DNA of 64,000 nucleotides from Amoeboaphelidium protococcarum X5 (Eukaryota > Fungi > Aphelidiomycota), in contig JALDTO010000251.1 of NCBI GenBank assembly GCA_023515725.1, forward strand, positions 310,001 to 374,000, written 5' to 3'. How positions within the stretch are numbered: position 1 is the stretch's first letter; each line of letters begins with the position of its first letter. Below, piece after piece: positions 1-18,300 of this stretch. Position numbers and translations under genes: made by a program. The notes under the pieces were generated by a model. That model had not been told where the DNA came from. It did no database searches and was given only the letters and a program-made list of their open reading frames with translations.

Positions 1-399
1 TTCTTTCAACGTTAAAACGAAGTGCCGTAGACTATGATACTAAATGGATATATAGATGAGCAATCGATAATTCTGCCGACCTGTGCTCTGTAATGTCTCT
101 CTCCTCTGAGCGAAAGAACAAAAAAAATTCTTAGAAAACATTCTACAGAAAAGAGCCAAGCGAGCGTCGCCCTTTCAGTCAGTCAGTTGTTCAAACCATC
201 TGCTTCTTCTTCTCCTCGTTAGAACAGTGAGCGATCGTTGTTTCTCTCATTCAGCGGCGTTGTTGTTGTTGGTGCCTCTTGAAACTTGTCCCTTCTCTCT
301 TATAGTTTTATTAGCGTTCTTACCTCTTAAGTTCCTACCAACTGCTTATTTCTCGCTGTATTCTTTACGCTAGTTTAAGCAACCTGAATAAGACTCAAA

Positions 400-1362
400 A
401 TGGCGATTGTTGATACTGTAACTTCAAAGGCACCGGGGGAGCGAAAGCCCATCTCATTCAGTAACTTGGCGCTAGGTGCCGGGTTGAATATATTTGAAAT
501 CTCTACTCTGGGTCAGCCGTTCGAAGTGCTCAAAACTTATATGGCCGCAAATAGGGGCATCTCTATGGTGGAATCTATGAAGTAGGTTTACAGTCGTGGT
601 GGTGTTGTCGGTTTCTACCAAGGCCTGATTCCGTGGGCATGGGTGGAAGCAAGTACTAAGGGCGCAGTGTTGCTCTTCACTGCCAGCGAGATGGAGTATA
701 TATTCTCATCCAAGTTTAAGTTCAGTCCTGGAACTGCTGGCATTCTCGCCGGATGTTGTGGTGGTATTGCATAGGCGTATACTACCATGGGCTTTTGTAC
801 GTTCATGAAGACGGTGGAGATTACCCGTCACAAGAGTCCGCCTGGTACCGCGGATGTTGGCTCCATCCAGATCGCAAGGGATATTCTGAGGCGGGAAGGT
901 ATCCGCGGTATCAACAAGGGTGTCAATGCCGTCGCTCTGAGACAATGTACCAACTGGGGTAGTCGTCTCGGTCTGTCGAGAATTGCTGAGAACACCATCA
1001 GGTCGCTGAGAGGTGACAGTGAAGATGAGATTAGAATGAAGAAGGCGCTCACTCCAGGGCAGAAGATTTTGGCTTCCACCATTGGAGGAGGTTTATCCTG
1101 TTGGAATCAGCCGATCGAGGTGATCCGAGTTGAGATGTAGTCTCAGGTGGCAACAGAAGGTCGCCCTAAGAAGATGACTATTGCTAATGCTGCCAAATGG
1201 ATATATCAGAATAATGGCTTGAAAGGATTCTTCAGAGGCGCAGTTCCAAGAGTTGGACTAGGTGCTTGGTAGACAACCTGTATGGTTGCATTAGGTGACA
1301 CTCTGAAAGAGAAGGTGGAACACTGGAAAAAGTCTAAGATTGTTGCCCCTATTAAAAAGTGA
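400..1362 (+). CDS. YHM2: Mitochondrial carrier, citrate/oxoglutarate carrier (Yhm2-like), 320 aa
   Basis: One frame from ATG400 to TGA1360 when TAG=Gln. Carrier motifs QPFEVLKT and [12 protein letters not shown]; Yhm2-typical [11 protein letters not shown]. Confidence 0.9.
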
Positions 1363-10478: not shown

Positions 10479-11519
10479 ATGTCTGAAGATTAGGCTAAAG
10501 CTTACGGTGCGCTGATGGGCAATGCAGCGAAAGAATAGTAGTATTAGGAGGAGAGAGTGAGACTGCATGGAATTCGTTGTCTCATCTCAGCCAGGGATGC
10601 AGGCCTCATTATTGGTGTTGGTGGTAAGACTGCTCAAGAGATTAGAGACTCCTGCCAAGTAAAGTTGAGAATGAGCGAAGCAGTTGAAGGCGCCAAGGAG
10701 AGAGTGTTGTTTATCAGTGCGGAGAAGGCTGAGTAGATTGGCAATGCCGTGCAATTCGTGAGCCGCAAACTGTTACAACACCGTCTCGAAATGGCCAAGA
10801 GTGCAGAAGAGCAAGGTAGACGGGTGTATACACCTAGATCTGTACTATCTGGTTAACCATTGTCTGATTCCGAGGTTGAGGTTAATTTGCTGATCCCTAA
10901 TTTCTATGTCGGCGCCGTCATTGGTAAAGGTGGATCCACTATAAAGTCGTTGTAAGAAGATTTTGGCATAAAGATGATGGTGTCTGATAGCATGTTAGGA
11001 CACAGCGACGATAGAAGTGTCAGTTTTATAGGTGCATCTGATAAAGTTGGCTTGGCTGTGGGTAGAACCGTCGGGATTGTTCGCGATGCTGAGAGTGAGA
11101 AGAAGGTTCTAGGTAATACGTACTATTAGCCTGGGGTGGACTCGTCTCAGTATAGTTAGTCGTCTTCATCTACTCCGCGAAGAGGTCGTATGTCTTCTGG
11201 AGCACCGTAGACGAGAGGTGGACCTGAGGAGACTAGAGATATAAGTGTCGACTCTGTGTACGTTGGATGTATTATTGGTCGTGGAGGTAAGAATATACAG
11301 CATCTTCGTCGAAAGTCTGGCTGCCAAATACATGTTGAGAATGCTCAAGATGGCAATGATATGGTGGATGGTGCAGCCTCAACTTCCCAAAAGAGAGTCA
11401 TAACTATTGGTGGATCACCTGCACAAATCGATGTGGCTATTCAATTGATTAATCAGAAGATTGAGTAGGAGAAGGAGCGTTTAGCTACGATCAACGCTGA
11501 AGGTGGTGAAGGTAATTGA
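10479..11519 (+). CDS. Triple KH-domain RNA-binding protein (hnRNP K/PCBP, Hek2/Pbp2-like), 346 aa
   Basis: Three KH loops: IIGVGGKT, VIGKGGST, IIGRGGKN. Confidence 0.9.
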
Positions 11520-11764
11520 TTGTTGTATGGATTCCCTGTTCAAGAATTTATTTAGCAGTATAAATGAATTGGCAGGCCGGATGGTTATAATAACAAGAGT
11601 GTATGGCTGGAGTGATTAAAGCCAGAGTTTTTTGCTTTGTGTGTCCTACGAATAAAAGGTTTAGGTCCAATTACCTTTCTAAAAGCTTTAGCATATACAG
11701 TAGTTAATCATGCGCAACATAATTAGAAAATGAGTATATTACAACAGCAATCCATAAAATTTAA

Positions 11765-12502
11765 TCATTCGAGCGATGAGAGTAATTTCTTGCGCTTAAA
11801 ATCGACGAGGAAGCTTTAGACTTGATCTTGGGTGGGCAGATCGGCGGGCCATTCAAAGTTTGGTTCTACAACGTCGACACCCATTTACTATTATGTGGCA
11901 TTTTCAGCTTCCGATAATTGTAGATATGATTAATCATCTTTCAAATCTTATTACCGCGCATAGCCATAGTATACATCCTTTTGTATAGCCTTCATCCACG
12001 CCTCTCTGTCTTGGGGATAACCAGCCCTTAATCGCTTTTATTGGTCCTCCTCTTTGAATAGATCGCGCACTTCAGGTAGCTCTACCGAACGGCCATAATA
12101 CTTATAATCCATTCTACCATCAGCAATCGCTCGCCCCTAATCTAGATTAGCTATAGGATTTGTGGCTTAAAGCACATTCTTTTTATAATCGTGTCCACCT
12201 CTAGCCACAATATCATCTTCAATCTAATTCTTCTCACGCATCAGATCATTAATCTCGTCATTTAGCTAACGCAGCTCATCCTCTGACATTTTCTTCTACT
12301 TTATATCATCTACTATGGCAGTAATCTTTTAGCTGATCTATTCCAGCAGTTGCAATCTGCGTATCTCCAACTGAGTAGTCTTTACAGGACCATCTCTTCT
12401 CTTCACTGGCTTTGAGCGCGGCACAATCAAACCCAGCTCTGCCAGCTGAGTCTCCCTCCATCTATACAGCATAGACTTGGACTTTTCTGCATTCTTTGCC
12501 AT
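11765..12502 (-). CDS. ISY1: Pre-mRNA splicing factor Isy1, 245 aa
   Basis: N-terminus MAKNAEKSKSMLYRW; LNDEINDLMREK; YKLYGRSVELPEVRDLF. Confidence 0.85.
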
Positions 12503-12618
12503 TCTGCTTATTTACAAGTAATTAGCGATAAAGTATTTCCTGTGAATGAATAATAATACGGCTCAATGTGAATGAAAGGGGAATGAAAAAAGTCAAAATG
12601 ATAAATTTTCTATTGAGA

Positions 12619-14382
12619 TCAAGCAGCGGCGACATTATTCGGTTTAGTCACCTAGTTCCCTTGATACGCTTTAACTGCAGCAGATATTTCTTAATTCTCC
12701 TTAATAACTCCATACTGGCTGTGATAGGCAAATTTAATCGCCTCACTGACATCAACGGGGTTGATTAAGGCGTCCAACTATGAGATCATTGACTGCAGAG
12801 CATCAGCAGAGAGATCTGACTCATGCTTCACTTGCTACTAGATCGTAGCTAAAATTAATGACAAATGAGTTTAAGCTTCAACTGCTGGGTTGGTTGCTTC
12901 ACTTGGATAAGCCTGTTAAAGCTTTCTGGCCAAAAACTCAAGGAATCTGTCCATACCTTCACCGGTGGTCAGACTGACTGCAAACGCGTCCATGCATCCC
13001 ACACCACTTAGACCAGATTTAATACGCTGCTCAAATTCTTCAATAGTCTCATCCGACGGAGCAGTCACCACTTCAGTCTTACCTGGAACTTTAGCACCGG
13101 CGATCTTGAGCGCATTCAATGCAATATCTTCCCTGACTCCTCCTCCAATTTCGCAGACAATCTATTTATTACACACCTTGGCTTCCCAGTGATCAAGTGC
13201 ACCTTTTCCCTTACCCATACGCACACCCAGCGGCTTGGAAGACATTGGATGTGTTGGCAGCACACGCAACCAGAACCTGCCACCCTTCACCTACTTGACG
13301 TGACGATGCAGAGTGGCACGTACTTCTTGCAGGCACTTCTCAGTCAGGCGAACGTCTTCCAACACCCTCAAGCCGTAATCGCCATACTTCACGTCATTAC
13401 CATCCGTGTTGCCGTCTAGTCTCAATGGAATTCTACCTCGGAAAGCAGTTCGCTTCACATCATCGCCTTATGGACTAAGAGGTGCCTACTTGTATCTCAA
13501 CTTGGCAGGTCCCAAAGGTGTTCTGATACTAACCTGATCTCGCTTAGTTAACAGGAGCACGGTATCTTGATCAATCTGATCCTGAATAATCTGAGGAATC
13601 AGCAGCTTATTCTTGGACTTGTACAACTGAGGCATATCAAGCAACATCAGTTTCATGTTAGGCTTCTGATCTTATTTTGCGACTTGCGATAACTCCACAG
13701 GATACCCAGCAATCCTAGTTCTCACCATGTCACTTTAGCCATTGTTGGGACTGATTAGATCTAACAATGCCGACTTACCAGAGCTGTCAGTTCCAGATAA
13801 ACTAATGCTATAAAGCGAATTCACATGACCACTCAGAAAATCTATATCACTGCAAAAACGCGATACAATATCCTTCACCAGAGCATCAACTTTTCCCTTC
13901 ACTTCAGTACTTTCAGTATGACATTCGCGTAAATCTTTCGCTTTTTGAATAGCTTCTTTGATAAGTTGCAGCTAACACGAAAGACCATACTGAATAAATT
14001 GATTCTAATTAGGGAAGTCTGAAAGTCTTAATCGGTCTTTGTTGTATCTCATAACGTCATCTGTGGCAGCTAAGCGAATATCAGCATCATTGTCGCTTTA
14101 CACGCGTAATTATTTTTAGATTGTATTTAAATTCTACTCATTATCAGCAAAGACAGATATTGTTCTATTATCCAGGATAGCTAGACAATTCTCGCTTTAA
14201 GACACCAGTGCAGCACTTGCCACCTTGCCGTTCTATGAAGACTACATCTGCCCGGTTAACTTCTAGAACGCAGATACGCGTTTAGGGCCATAAATCTCCA
14301 TCACTGGACCTTTAACTAAAGCCAGTGAATTCTAAAGATTCTACACCTATGGCTTCCTGAATATCGAAGTAATTTGGCTCAT
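12619..14382 (-). CDS. Degenerate MnmE/GTPBP3-like protein with a mitochondrial ribosomal uL16 domain inserted in its G domain, 587 aa
   Basis: Single TGA-free frame. G1 [17 protein letters not shown]4 LLTKRD, then uL16 ([29 protein letters not shown]), then G5 [11 protein letters not shown] and a helical C-terminus. Confidence 0.85.
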
Positions 14383-14610
14383 TATGATGTATATCTCTGT
14401 GGTCTTTTGCCCAGAATTCTATCGCTGATCACAATAAAATCAGAAAGTCTCGCGTTTACAAAGCAGAGCGGTTCCTATATTACGGTTTTACGCGACGTCG
14501 CTCTGAGGGAGGATGTTGCTTAGGACTTTTCACGGAAAGCTCTCAAATGGGCGCGAGAACACCCTCTTTGTCAAAGAAACGTTTCAATAAAATCTTACCA
14601 GGTAGTGCAA

Positions 14611-15102
14611 ATGTCCAAGTATAAAAATCCAGCCTGTACTGTTGATGCTCTACTTCTTAGAAAGCGTGATAAAGTTTTTGACTTGCTGGTGATTAAAAGG
14701 AAGAAAGATCCATTCGCTGGTCAATATGCTCTACCCGGTGGATTTGTAGATTATGGAGAGGATCCGGAGAAGGCGGTGTTGAGAGAGTTAACAGAAGAGA
14801 CAGGACTGAACACTGATGGTGCTCAAGTTACACTGTCTTCAGTCCACGGTAGTGCTGAACGTGATCCGCGCGGGCATACTATTTCAATCGCTTACGCTGT
14901 TAAACTCACACACAATGACTATGACAAGATTCAAGGCTCTGATGATGCCGAGTCTGCTGAATGGATAGAAGTGAAAAAGTTCTAAAACAAGACTGAACAA
15001 CTTGCCTTTGATCATCAAAGTATCGTTGATCATTTTATGTCGTGGTTCTAGAACGGTTCCCCATCAGGTCAAGATCAAGGATACTTTATGACATCGAAAT
15101 GA
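14611..15102 (+). CDS. Nudix hydrolase (ADP-ribose pyrophosphatase-like), 163 aa
   Basis: Nudix box PGGFVDYGEDPEKAVLRELTEETGL; RDPRG; LAFDH. Confidence 0.92.
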
Positions 15103-15320
15103 TATTTATTACTATTGCCGATATGAATTATATGACAGTGCACAGTCTGGCGTTTGAACTATGAAGACCACGCTCTGGTGGTGTGCTATAAATAAATCCT
15201 GTTTCACTCGCTGCTTGGAGATCACCAATTTTCAACTAATCAACTCCATTTAGTCCAGTCCAGTTCTTTATCGCCTCGTATTTCCATATTAGAGACATTT
15301 AAAAAATTAATTGTAAAATC

Positions 15321-18300
15321 ATGTCTGATATTATAGAAAAATTGAGACGTGAGAGGGAAGAAAGATAGAAAAAATAGGCTGAGGAGATGGCTAAATTCGA
15401 AGCTGATTTGAAGAGTAAGAGGGAATAGAGGCTGAGAGATAAGATGCTGTCAAGTGAAAATAAAATCACAGCTGCTCCCATCTCGTAGCAGGTGAGCAAG
15501 ACTGCAAAAATAGACACCACCACAAGTATCCTAAAATAGATAAATAGCTCCTTATCCCAAGTGGAGGCCAGTTAGAATATGGCCAGTCAGTCCATCATGA
15601 ACTTGAACAAGGACTTGCAGAGAAAGCAGCAGCACAGAGAAGACGAGCAGCAGAAATGGTCAGATCTGAAACGGCAAGATCGCCTGAAACATTTGGAACG
15701 GACAATGAAGCTCGACTCTCTCGCCGCGTCGTTCAAGTTTGGACGAACAAGGCCGAAGCGTTTCGAGGTGAATCCCAAAGAATTCTATGATTTGGATTTC
15801 TCATATGATGCCAATGGTAGAGATTAGTCTGATTCTGCGAATAATGCTTTGAAGAATATCTCTGAGCGTGAATAAGAGCTGCTCGCAATGGTGTAATCCA
15901 GGGAGGATGAGTTGCTTCAAGATCCTGATGCTTTGCACAGTCTTATATCCAAGGGTGAGCTGATTGTAAAGGGAATGAAAGACACTGCGACTTTTGGATT
16001 GTTTGGTAAAGATTAATAGGAATCCCTCATAAAAGCATAGATATAAAACAATCGCGTTGATAATTATAGTGTTAGTGATACTGCACAAGATGATCATCTT
16101 TTAGCTTCTCCTCTAGCAGGTGATGATGATCAGCCTCAGCTTCGTGAAAATAGATTCAAAGAGAGAATGAAAAGCTCAATCCAGAAGGTGGACTATTCAG
16201 AGTATTTCCCGTCTAACATTGGTTTGGTTGAAGGCGTCTTTGTGTTTAGAATTGAGGACATGTAGCCGGCTCAGCTGATGTTGTCAAAAGATTCTGTTTA
16301 GCTCAGTGTTGGAGATTGTTACATTGTGCTGAAAGTATTTGAGAACTAAAATAGTCAGCTGGATTGGAGGATATTTTAGTTTGTAGGCAAGTAGGCTTCA
16401 ATGGATAAGTAAGCTTGTAGCGCTATTTATGCAGTTGGCCTTCGAGATTTATTGCCGCAATCGTCATCATTAGGAGTGAGATCTGATATTTAACGCGAAT
16501 AGTCCGGAGAAGAAAGTGAAGAGTTTCTTAATGTCTTTAGAGCTCTTGGTTTGGATTATCATCTATCTGATGCATCCCAGGCAGCTTCTGGTGGTTTGTA
16601 TAGAGTACTTGAACGTGAATATCCTTTACTCTGCTATCAGGGACGTGTTTCTTCTTAACGTCACAGAAGATTAGTATTTCGTTTGGTTGAGTCTAATTTT
16701 CTAGCATTCTCTTCCAAATATAGTTACATTGTTGATGCTGGTAAGTCAGTCTATGTTTGGTATGGTGCTGAGTCTCTTTTAAATGACAGAGCCAAAGTTC
16801 ATCTGCAAGCTCAACTTATAGTCAGTAATGAGCGCTCCTCAATAATGACATCCGCAGTGCAAGAAGTCCATCAGGGGAGAGAGTTTGAAAACGAAGACTT
16901 TATGGAATTATTTTCTGATTGTCAATTGTAATCTATATCAGAAGAAGAAGAATCCGAGACTGATGAAGTATCTTAAGGCATCATTGACGTTATATTGCGA
17001 GAGATCAGCGCTGAGACTTTGCGAGATGTCAAAAAGACAAAGTCGCTGGATATTGCTAATCTCTAGATTAGATCGTTAGACTTTATTTCTCTAAGTGAGG
17101 AATGTTGCTACTTGCTTGATTGCGTCAGTCAGATATTCTTATGGGTCGGTCATCAATGTAGTGACTAAGTCAGAACGATTGCTGAATAGCTTGCTTTGCC
17201 ATTGTTAGTGGAATCTTAAACACGGCCTGGTTATATGTAAATAGTTAAACTTTATTAAAAGACAGAGACGGAGATTTTTAAATCTTATTTCAACAATTGG
17301 CCATAAATTTAAGCTGGTAGCCAGTAGAGTCGCGATAATCAGGCAAATGGTGAGTAAAAGTCGGCTTTCTAGACAAGAATTGATATCAGAGCCATCTACG
17401 ATTAGAGTCCTGGTGGAAGGCTTACGCGTAAAGAAGAGGAATTTTATCAAGAGTTATTTACGAGAGCCAATAATCTACTCCTCAGTTTTAAAGTATTCAG
17501 ATATAGCGAGGATAGGAGAAATTTTGTTGCAGCTCAAGATTGGAATGTTGATCTTCCAATATCATCATCCTCACCCACAGCTGATGGTTCAGATTTTGGC
17601 CACTTTTGCAGTGATCAAATGTACATATTTCTCTGTGTCTACCGAAAAGTATAGAAATAAGAAGATGTTGAGGGTGGCGATGTATCTGGCGACCCTGACA
17701 ACGTCCCTTTGGATATGCAAGAGTGTGTCACTTATGTCTGGACTGGGAGACATCTTCAGACGCCATCCATTGCGTACTTGAAATTCCAACATCACTTTAA
17801 GGATTAAATTAAAGCACTGATCTTATAATTAAGTGGTGGTAAGTCGGATGTTCGTTTCGTTTACATGAACTAGGAGAAAGAGTCTTTAGCTCTATGCGCT
17901 CACTTAAGAAAAAGTATTATTGTACATTGGGGATCTTCGTCAGCTTCAGGTAATGTTTCTGACGAAGGCTTAGCTCGGCTATACCATATACGAACTGATA
18001 TCAAATACAAGGTGACTAGATGTATTTAAACGACACCCATGGTGAAGTCTCTGTGTACCAGGGATGTGTTTTTATTGATAGGACGTCAATAGAAACCATA
18101 TCTTTGGATAGGCAATGGTGCTAGTAAAGAGGAAGAGAAATTGGCTAAGCTTGTCGCATTGAAATGTCTTCGATTGGATCAAGAGGCGGACATTAACAAG
18201 CATGTGCAAGTTTTCAAAGAGAAACTGGAGCCTGATGAGTTTTGGCATCAGCTCGGGCCCGACTTTGAGAAAGTTAAACTGGCCCCAGGAGCTAAAAGTA

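Follow-up and report, generated by a model that had tools for sequence, protein, structure and literature searches.

A mitochondrial-type ribosomal protein uL16 nested in the G domain of an MnmE-derived protein of Amoeboaphelidium protococcarum

Nucleotide-binding or enzyme-like folds have been recruited to mitochondrial ribosomes before: mS29 (DAP3), which binds GTP through a P-loop, belongs to the mitoribosome permanently, and other mitoribosome-specific proteins also derive from enzymes. The loading of uL16 is a late, GTPase-gated step of large-subunit assembly, served by RbgA and ObgE in bacteria, by Mtg1 and Mtg2 in mitochondria, and by Lsg1, Nmd3 and Sqt1 for the cytosolic uL16 (Rpl10). 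The known mitochondrial uL16 proteins (uL16m; MRPL16 in yeast and human) are free-standing, with at most terminal extensions. To our knowledge, and in our literature searches, there is no other case of a universal ribosomal protein nested inside a GTPase domain, and such proteins almost never occur as internal domains. Here we describe a gene at positions 12619-14382, on the reverse strand, of a 64,000-nucleotide stretch of the Amoeboaphelidium protococcarum X5 genome (contig JALDTO010000251.1, positions 310,001 to 374,000; the window), in which a complete uL16 is inserted into the G domain of a protein derived from MnmE. MnmE (TrmE in bacteria, MSS1 in yeast and GTPBP3 in human) has an N-terminal dimerisation domain that binds 5,10-methylenetetrahydrofolate (5,10-CH2-THF), and a G domain that is nested in a helical domain (PMC12397908). 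The C-terminal FC(V/I/L)GK motif of MnmE carries a Cys that is crucial for the reaction and a last Lys that contacts the flavin adenine dinucleotide (FAD) of MnmG (PMC12397908).

The fusion protein has the domain order of MnmE/TrmE, MSS1 and GTPBP3, together with their typical G(Y/I/F)PV strand and motifs G1, G4 and G5, but differs from them in having a 157-residue uL16 after G4, Gly in place of Cys, and an extended C-terminus with HxxYG(V/I)LxxN. In the A. protococcarum member, G3 and switch II are also deleted, G2 is reduced, the N-terminal domain is unrecognisable to Pfam, and no MnmG/MTO1 gene was found in the genome. With uL16m and bacterial uL16 it has in common the full PF00252 profile, the fold (Z scores of 13-15 to 3j6b_K, 6ywe_K and bacterial chains) and the RMGKGKG..W loop, whereas its uL16 continues at both ends into a G domain. 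Unlike mS29/DAP3 and other recruits, which are separate polypeptides brought in by protein and RNA contacts, the module in the fusion surrounds a core ribosomal protein to which it is covalently joined, and it derives from a tRNA-modification enzyme. The link between a TRAFAC GTPase and uL16 recalls the uL16-loading GTPases, although those are separate, transient and from other families. Both families are well known, and their combination makes a new domain architecture.

The gene comprises one frame in which TAA and TAG are read as Gln. Between 14382 and 12619 on the reverse strand there are 26 in-frame TAA or TAG codons and no in-frame TGA, and the translation of this frame is identical to the database protein P0011, whose 90%-identity cluster holds three NCBI entries, all named 'hypothetical protein [Amoeboaphelidium protococcarum]'. 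A first-pass annotation made from the sequence had described a single TGA-free frame of 587 codons and had quoted the motifs GTDSSGKS and LLTKRD, a uL16 and a G5; the frame is as described, and all of these elements lie where they had been placed. The features of the gene, all on the reverse strand, are as follows.

12619..14382, reverse strand: whole coding sequence, with an ATG start, 587 sense codons and a TGA stop (12619-12621); TAA and TAG encode Gln
14008..14382, reverse strand: N-terminus and degenerate MnmE N-terminal (TrmE_N-like) domain, residues 1-125; the family profile aligns from residue 27
13813..14007, reverse strand: first half of the MnmE helical domain (two long helices), residues 126-190, from AlphaFold2 (AF2), VIA and hhalign
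13531..13812, reverse strand: G domain part 1 with G1, a G2 remnant and G4, residues 191-284, from profile and fold alignments
13771-13794, reverse strand: G1 motif GTDSSGKS, residues 197-204
Residues 226-231, reverse strand: GYPVEL strand motif
13537-13554, reverse strand: G4 motif LLTKRD, residues 277-282
13060..13530, reverse strand: complete bacterial/mitochondrial-type uL16, residues ~285-441, directly after G4, from Pfam PF00252, Foldseek and VIA
12913..13059, reverse strand: G domain part 2 (helix α4, strand β6, G5 SLTTGEG and helix α5), residues 442-490
Residues 468-476, reverse strand: G5 region AVSLTTGEG
12622..12912, reverse strand: second half of the MnmE helical domain, residues 491-587, with H-x-x-Y-G-V-I-K-x-N at the position of FC(V/I/L)GK in MnmE
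12602..12618, reverse strand: short 3' untranslated region, with a polyadenylation site at ~12602

The segment VMEIYGP of P0011 aligns with IRISGP of MnmE, and the short acid-free N-terminus that precedes it is a possible mitochondrial presequence. At the other end, the A. protococcarum protein carries a 24-residue extension after H-x-x-Y-G-V-I-K-x-N.

The Pfam profile Ribosomal_L16 (PF00252) matches P0011 over residues 324-439 with an E-value of 1.7e-32 and 112.6 bits (cut-off 27.9), covering profile positions 17-132 of 132. Three stop-free pieces of the locus match the same profile in order, at positions 17-56, 59-96 and 101-132. The uL16 part consists of a basic N-terminal tail (PAKLRYK...), which is conserved across the fusion family, and an α/β core with RMGKGKG..HW. 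When compared with Foldseek, it matched bacterial uL16 with an E-value of 1.7e-10, a target template modelling (TM) score of 0.64 and 39-40% identity. Structural alignment of the P0011 model with VIA gave Z scores of 13.2-13.9 to chloroplast, plant-mitochondrial and yeast-mitochondrial uL16 over residues 321..442, and the model of an environmental orthologue, P0015, reached a Z score of 15.2 against yeast uL16m (3j6b_K). All the features tested for an organellar uL16 are present in A. protococcarum: the full-domain Pfam match, the α/β fold and the lack of any other organellar copy in the genome.

Searching the genome (23.6 Mb, 346 contigs) identified four Ribosomal_L16 loci, namely the 12619-14382 gene, its homeolog on contig C98, and one locus each on contigs C158 and C200. 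The latter two match the full PF00252 profile at 124 bits and were taken for the cytosolic type. The 12619-14382 gene, together with its C98 homeolog, is the sole mitochondrial-type uL16 found in the genome, and the profile search gave no separate uL16m. As a weak test, uL16 alone (P0003:272-426, from a second orthologue) was used as a database query; it retrieved only two fragments of the fusion family, and no free-standing uL16 sharing five-residue words.

The flanks could not be identified until searches had retrieved the full-length protein from the database along with its orthologues. From the stop-free pieces, the flanks gave only weak Pfam P-loop and HflX_C hints, and sequence searches of the PDB returned nothing useful for them. 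We compared the uL16-deleted A. protococcarum protein, and a family profile without the uL16 columns, with 60 canonical MnmE sequences. Using hhalign, the uL16-deleted protein aligned to MnmE with a probability of 98.2% and an E-value of 4.7e-14 over 186 columns (the G and C-terminal helical parts), and the family profile aligned with an E-value of 1.9e-50 over 360 columns, spanning MnmE positions 25-467 of 473. A hidden Markov model (HMM) of the 60 canonical MnmE sequences scored the orthologues P0003, P0015 and P0007 at 186, 174 and 170 bits, respectively; the uL16-deleted window protein scored 32 bits, as one domain crossing the deletion joint, against 4.8 for the best of 300 shuffles. When P0003 was used as the query in a database search, all matches after the fusion proteins were named MnmE, TrmE, GTPBP3 or MSS1, the first being from Mucoromycota (6.8e-44, 32% identity). 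The fusion proteins have the colinear three-domain order of MnmE, with an N-terminal domain, a helical domain, and a G domain nested between the helical halves. At the N-terminus the likeness is faint: P0011 has no match to Pfam TrmE_N (PF10396), residues 1-125 being aligned colinearly through the family profile only, and P0015 retains a weak TrmE_N match.

Structure prediction bears on how the flanks and the insert are arranged. The AF2 model of P0011 has a mean predicted local distance difference test score (pLDDT) of 66.5, with 70-96 in the helical and G parts, 79-94 in the uL16 core, and less than 50 for residues 1-122; helices are predicted at residues 126-153 and 159-184 (pLDDT 70-86). 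With the whole P0011 model as the Foldseek query, the 50 listed matches were all uL16 chains, hiding the MnmE match that a wide VIA comparison revealed. VIA aligned the model to MnmE 3gee with a Z score of 15.0 (241 residues over 119..542), and the alignments to both 3gee and 9hip begin at residue 119. Structures of G domains align across residues 188..495 of the model, which indicates that the G fold closes around the insert. The model of P0015, the best-preserved orthologue, is of higher quality (pLDDT 83.5, predicted TM score 0.78) and has a confident N-terminal domain. It aligns to the G domain of E. coli MnmE (2gj8) across the insert with a Z score of 16.5 and a root mean square deviation of 2.6 (151 of 161 residues), and to full MnmE in the MnmE-MnmG complex (9hip) with 272 residues over 43..668.

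These profile and fold alignments bear out two proposals of the first-pass annotation, that the flanks derive from MnmE and that the uL16 is a domain insertion rather than an end-to-end fusion: the insertion lies between G4 and helix α4 of the G domain and is confirmed as a true one. It had also been expected that the uL16-deleted protein would resolve into TrmE_N, MnmE_helical and G domains, of which the G and helical parts were recovered and a Pfam TrmE_N match was not. Since the G domain of MnmE is itself nested in the helical domain, the uL16 insertion makes a three-level nesting.

Several residues that MnmE needs for catalysis have been lost. In MnmE, a K+-activated GTPase of tRNA U34 xm5 modification, the full set G1-G5 reads GxPNxGKS, GTTRD, DTAGLRE, NKxD and SA/SxxTG. 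The position of the catalytic Cys is occupied by Gly in all ten aligned fusion proteins, whereas Cys is present in 59 of the 60 canonical MnmE sequences, and the Gly of FC(V/I/L)GK is replaced by Leu in eight of the ten and by Ile in the A. protococcarum proteins. The fusion chains run 3 to ~40 residues beyond the normal end of MnmE, and in this region the family has a newly conserved H-x-x-Y-G-(V/I)-L-x-x-N. In the A. protococcarum G domain, the K+-binding Asn of the P-loop is lost from G1 (GTDSSGKS), G2 is reduced to GQSD, and G3 (DxxG) is replaced by QVAK with deletion of switch II, while G4 reads TKRD and G5 SLTTGEG. P0018 and P0005 resemble A. protococcarum in being without DxxG and having switch II deleted. 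P0003, P0015, P0007 and P0016, by contrast, keep G1 (GPPNAGKS, or GAANSGKS in P0007), G2 (GST..), G3 (DTVG), G4 (NKxD) and G5. The earlier statement that G2, G3 and the C-terminal CxGK are lost thus stands for G3 and the Cys motif, and needs qualifying for G2, which is nearly gone but leaves the GQSD remnant.

A canonical MSS1 elsewhere in the genome was looked for with Pfam and with fungal MnmE, and none was found. The genome-wide TrmE_N search had no match at E<=1, MnmE_helical matched noise only, and fungal MnmE as the query gave nothing beyond 19-bit P-loop matches. MTO1 (GidA/MnmG) was not found in the genome either, the best PF01134 (GIDA) matches scoring 33 bits over profile positions 1-150 only; as candidates for MTO1 these were rejected, the sequence reading as dihydrolipoamide dehydrogenase. 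Similarly, the best match to PF03054 (tRNA_Me_trans/MnmA) was rejected as MTU1, the sequence reading as CTU1/NCS6-like. The mitochondrial xm5s2U34 pathway may therefore be absent from A. protococcarum. No gene of this pathway was detected, and the fusion gene is the only MSS1 descendant in the genome rather than a spare paralogue, so that the 'dead MnmE paralogue' of the first-pass annotation is better described as a dead MnmE derivative, judged by its lost motifs, that is the sole MnmE-derived gene, in two homeologs. Because the N-domain signature, the full set of G motifs and the Cys motif are missing here, and the partner enzyme was not found, we regard the protein as derived from MnmE but not as an MnmE.

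The architecture is not restricted to A. protococcarum. An HMMER scan of 1.84 billion representative sequences, using an 81-residue query that spans the end of uL16 and G5, retrieved P0011 and seven environmental proteins across the same junction, and the search with P0003 added four further fusion proteins. About ten environmental holomycotan proteins carry the uL16 insert at the same site, and some of them keep G1-G5. Each orthologue is a single open reading frame (ORF) in the standard code on a eukaryotic contig of 8-27 kb from ENA or Logan assemblies, where F-box/WD40, kinase, RasGEF and DPH6 genes are among the neighbours. Identity of the A. protococcarum protein to these relatives is 56-72% for uL16 and 11-40% for the flanks. 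The DPH6 neighbour of P0015 is closest to Fungi; at an identity of only 35-41%, the hosts are placed as deep holomycotans, and an aphelid host is not demonstrated for P0015. A tree of the MnmE part (top matches only, midpoint-rooted, partial sequences left out) unites the fusion proteins in one long-branched clade that could not be placed relative to fungal, oomycete or alphaproteobacterial MnmE, and we make no claim as to a donor. The single clade and the identical insertion point argue for a single origin. The first-pass annotation had considered the architecture undescribed, and indeed our full-text literature search found no description of uL16m or L16 fused with MnmE, TrmE, MSS1 or GTPBP3; the correction to be made is that it is not private to A. 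protococcarum. The P0003 gene call itself is truncated: an upstream exon lies at L013:9690-10000, and a GT..AG intron of ~45 nt separates it from the called start. The restored exon encodes a basic presequence and an RFKISG strand, and restores the N-terminal domain.

At C98:1292452-1295799 the entire locus recurs as a homeolog, in which the downstream ISY1-like gene is also present (synonymous divergence, dS, ~0.42). The C98 copy of the fusion gene has the same 587 codons without indels and 90% nucleotide identity, and differs from the window gene mostly at third codon positions, which account for 64 of 100 differences in the N flank, 26 of 29 in uL16 and 33 of 46 in the C flank. We calculated ratios of nonsynonymous to synonymous divergence (dN/dS) between the two copies by the Nei-Gojobori method. 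For the whole coding sequence dN/dS is 0.081, and by parts it is 0.096 in the N flank (codons 1-290, dS 0.48), 0.019 in uL16 (codons 291-440, dS 0.30) and 0.087 in the C flank (codons 441-587, dS 0.44). The uL16 part, earlier described as well conserved, is the most constrained of the three. Over codons 1-137 the ratio is 0.092, and codons 441-488 contain no amino-acid differences between the homeologs. The whole ORF is thus under purifying selection. In codons 1-27 the homeologs differ 0, 1 and 6 times at the first, second and third codon positions, while outside the frame they are 74% identical over 220 nt upstream (with 10 gap columns) and 120 nt downstream; the pattern in codons 1-27 and the diverged DNA outside together delimit the coding region as M1 to the TGA. 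The C98 copy, the NCBI alleles P0001, P0010 and P0012, and an RNA-like contig that is 4.3% divergent suggest that the genome is polyploid or hybrid, or that several strains are represented.

Expression was assessed from contigs of four runs of one 2021 study, which are not recorded as RNA but have RNA-like signs, in that depth changes gene by gene, intergenic DNA is absent, and one contig has a T22 tail. In three of the four runs, one contig spans 12602-14061, encompassing the C-terminal helices, G5, all of uL16, G4 and G1; run X4 has two contigs instead (12602-12915 and 12944-14061). A second contig, 14140-14358, covers the 5' part of the gene. The contigs start at 12602 in all four runs, and in run X4 a loose end of T22 followed by AATGAT precedes 12602 (+ strand). 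The T22 at 12602 is read as a poly(A) tail, added 17 nt beyond the stop codon. No splice joints within 10800-16300, and no indels in the gene, were found in the contigs of the four runs. Since 4.3% of its sites are different from those of the window, the long contig represents another allele with the same frame. The fusion gene is expressed as one unspliced polyadenylated RNA. The listed contigs of all four runs break at 14061 and 14140, leaving a gap at 14062-14139 with no joint or loose end. Depth in bins does not drop across the gap, so shorter unlisted contigs probably cover it; rather than an intron, the gap most likely marks an allelic bubble where the N-terminal region varies most.

Two neighbouring genes are seen in the same runs. 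A Nudix-type ORF (14605-14985, + strand) and the fusion gene are arranged head to head, with ~220 nt between the ORF and the start codon of the fusion gene. In three of the four runs, contigs are 5-8 times deeper over this ORF than over the fusion gene. The next gene downstream (12306-12502 and beyond, reverse strand) begins MAKNAEKSKSMLYRWRE, and we take it to be an ISY1-like splicing factor. In this gene, about half of the contig depth has one nucleotide inserted at 12328 and one deleted at 12335, an allelic and self-compensating frameshift pair.

We consider it probable that the MnmE (MSS1/GTPBP3)-derived module whose G domain encloses the uL16m of this organism has ceased to modify tRNA and become a permanent accessory of the mitoribosome. 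The fusion protein would be imported into mitochondria, with which the acid-free N-termini, rich in basic and hydroxylated residues (clearest in P0015, P0018, P0007 and the restored P0003), are compatible. Its conserved uL16 moiety would then take its normal place in the large subunit, and the MnmE moiety, attached through two linkers by the guanine-binding side of its G domain, would ride along as a folded accessory module. The role of this module may be structural, or it may act as a built-in chaperone or checkpoint for the late loading of uL16. Given that this loading is supervised by GTPases in bacterial, mitochondrial and cytosolic large-subunit assembly, an origin as an assembly checkpoint is attractive for the G-intact members. 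In relatives with G1-G5 the module may still bind GTP, whereas that of A. protococcarum would be at most a nucleotide-binding remnant that can hardly switch, and is more likely structural. The first-pass interpretation is supported overall, and none of the three outcomes that it named as refuting has occurred: contigs are continuous, no separate uL16m was found, and the same single ORF recurs in independent assemblies. Several points weigh on the other side. Residence in the mitoribosome, a one-piece state after import and the steric fit of an appendage of ~430 residues at the uL16 site are presumed. AF2 gives no confident fold for residues 1-122, and Pfam has no match to them. MTO1 and MTU1 are taken as absent on the basis of six-frame Pfam searches in the 346-contig assembly, and the RNA evidence consists of contigs from a single study, in runs not recorded as RNA, and contigs drop rare isoforms.

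The other accounts of the locus differ in what they make of the finished protein. The chain could be made whole as a precursor and cut by mitochondrial proteases on both sides of uL16, freeing a small uL16m, while the flanks would serve only as a carrier for import or folding or would form a protein of their own. Flexible linkers are indeed predicted (pLDDT below 50 for residues 289-322 of P0011 and 394-418 of P0015). The low-confidence segment, however, is uL16's own basic N-terminal tail, which is conserved across the fusion proteins and likewise adopts an extended form in solved ribosomes, and the two cuts would split a G fold whose halves are predicted to close into one fold around the insert and, with the helical domain, are under purifying selection (dN/dS 0.09); we therefore judge such processing unlikely. 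A bifunctional enzyme, in which the MnmE part still modifies the wobble uridine while tethered to the ribosome, using another partner or Cys-independent chemistry, would suit P0003, P0015, P0007 and P0016 with their G1-G5, and the confidently folded N-terminal domain of P0015. Against this, the crucial Cys is Gly in all ten fusion proteins and the chain continues past its normal end (see PMC12397908 for the roles of the Cys and Lys), and A. protococcarum is without G3 and switch II, with MTO1 and MTU1 not detected, making retained catalysis very unlikely.

Doubts about the gene model itself can be largely put aside. The uL16 block (~13027-13533) could be an in-frame, intron-like segment (an exitron), the gene then yielding both a uL16-containing form and a plain MnmE-like form, and a GT at 13533 (in the context CAG|GTTAGT) with a downstream AG does provide an in-frame pair. 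Yet the contigs of the four runs have no joint (10800-16300) and continue over both uL16 boundaries, splicing there would take away the beginning of helix α4 as well, and the insert is in frame in all orthologues despite their different nucleotide sequences, with uL16 the most constrained part; we reject this reading, which seems highly improbable. An artefact, be it an assembly chimera, mis-joined neighbours or a chance open frame, has in its favour only that a TGA-free frame arises more easily by chance in a one-stop code, nothing else having been found. It is countered by two genomic copies and three further database alleles that share the 587 codons with coding-like substitutions, by the RNA-like contigs that cover the gene, and by independent single ORFs with the same junctions on 8-27 kb contigs in ENA and Logan, and we reject it as having a negligible chance of being correct.

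A bolder form of the accessory-module reading concerns the relatives with intact G motifs, and we put it forward only tentatively, as a rather unlikely possibility. In those members of the clade, the protein might be a self-gated ribosomal protein, in which the nucleotide state of the G domain, with uL16 spliced in next to G4 and G5, times the seating of uL16m in the large subunit; or the module might stay on the mature ribosome beside the A-site tRNA corridor, handling tRNA. A. protococcarum would then represent a later stage, its switch decayed to a fixed structural block.

Several consequences follow for the family. On the evidence of sequence, its members form a series from relatives with intact G motifs but no Cys to A. 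protococcarum, with its switch deleted and pathway genes undetected, which illustrates the conversion of an enzyme into a ribosome-bound module that is usually inferred only from cryo-electron microscopy of odd mitoribosomes. In databases, the fusion proteins are labelled 'hypothetical' or 'ribosomal protein L16', and this annotation can now be corrected. The insertion is a shared-derived character that could help to place aphelid-like environmental lineages near the root of Fungi. Should the self-gated reading be true, the family would provide the first example of a core ribosomal protein that carries its own GTPase, and would document a route from a tRNA-modification enzyme to a component of the ribosome.

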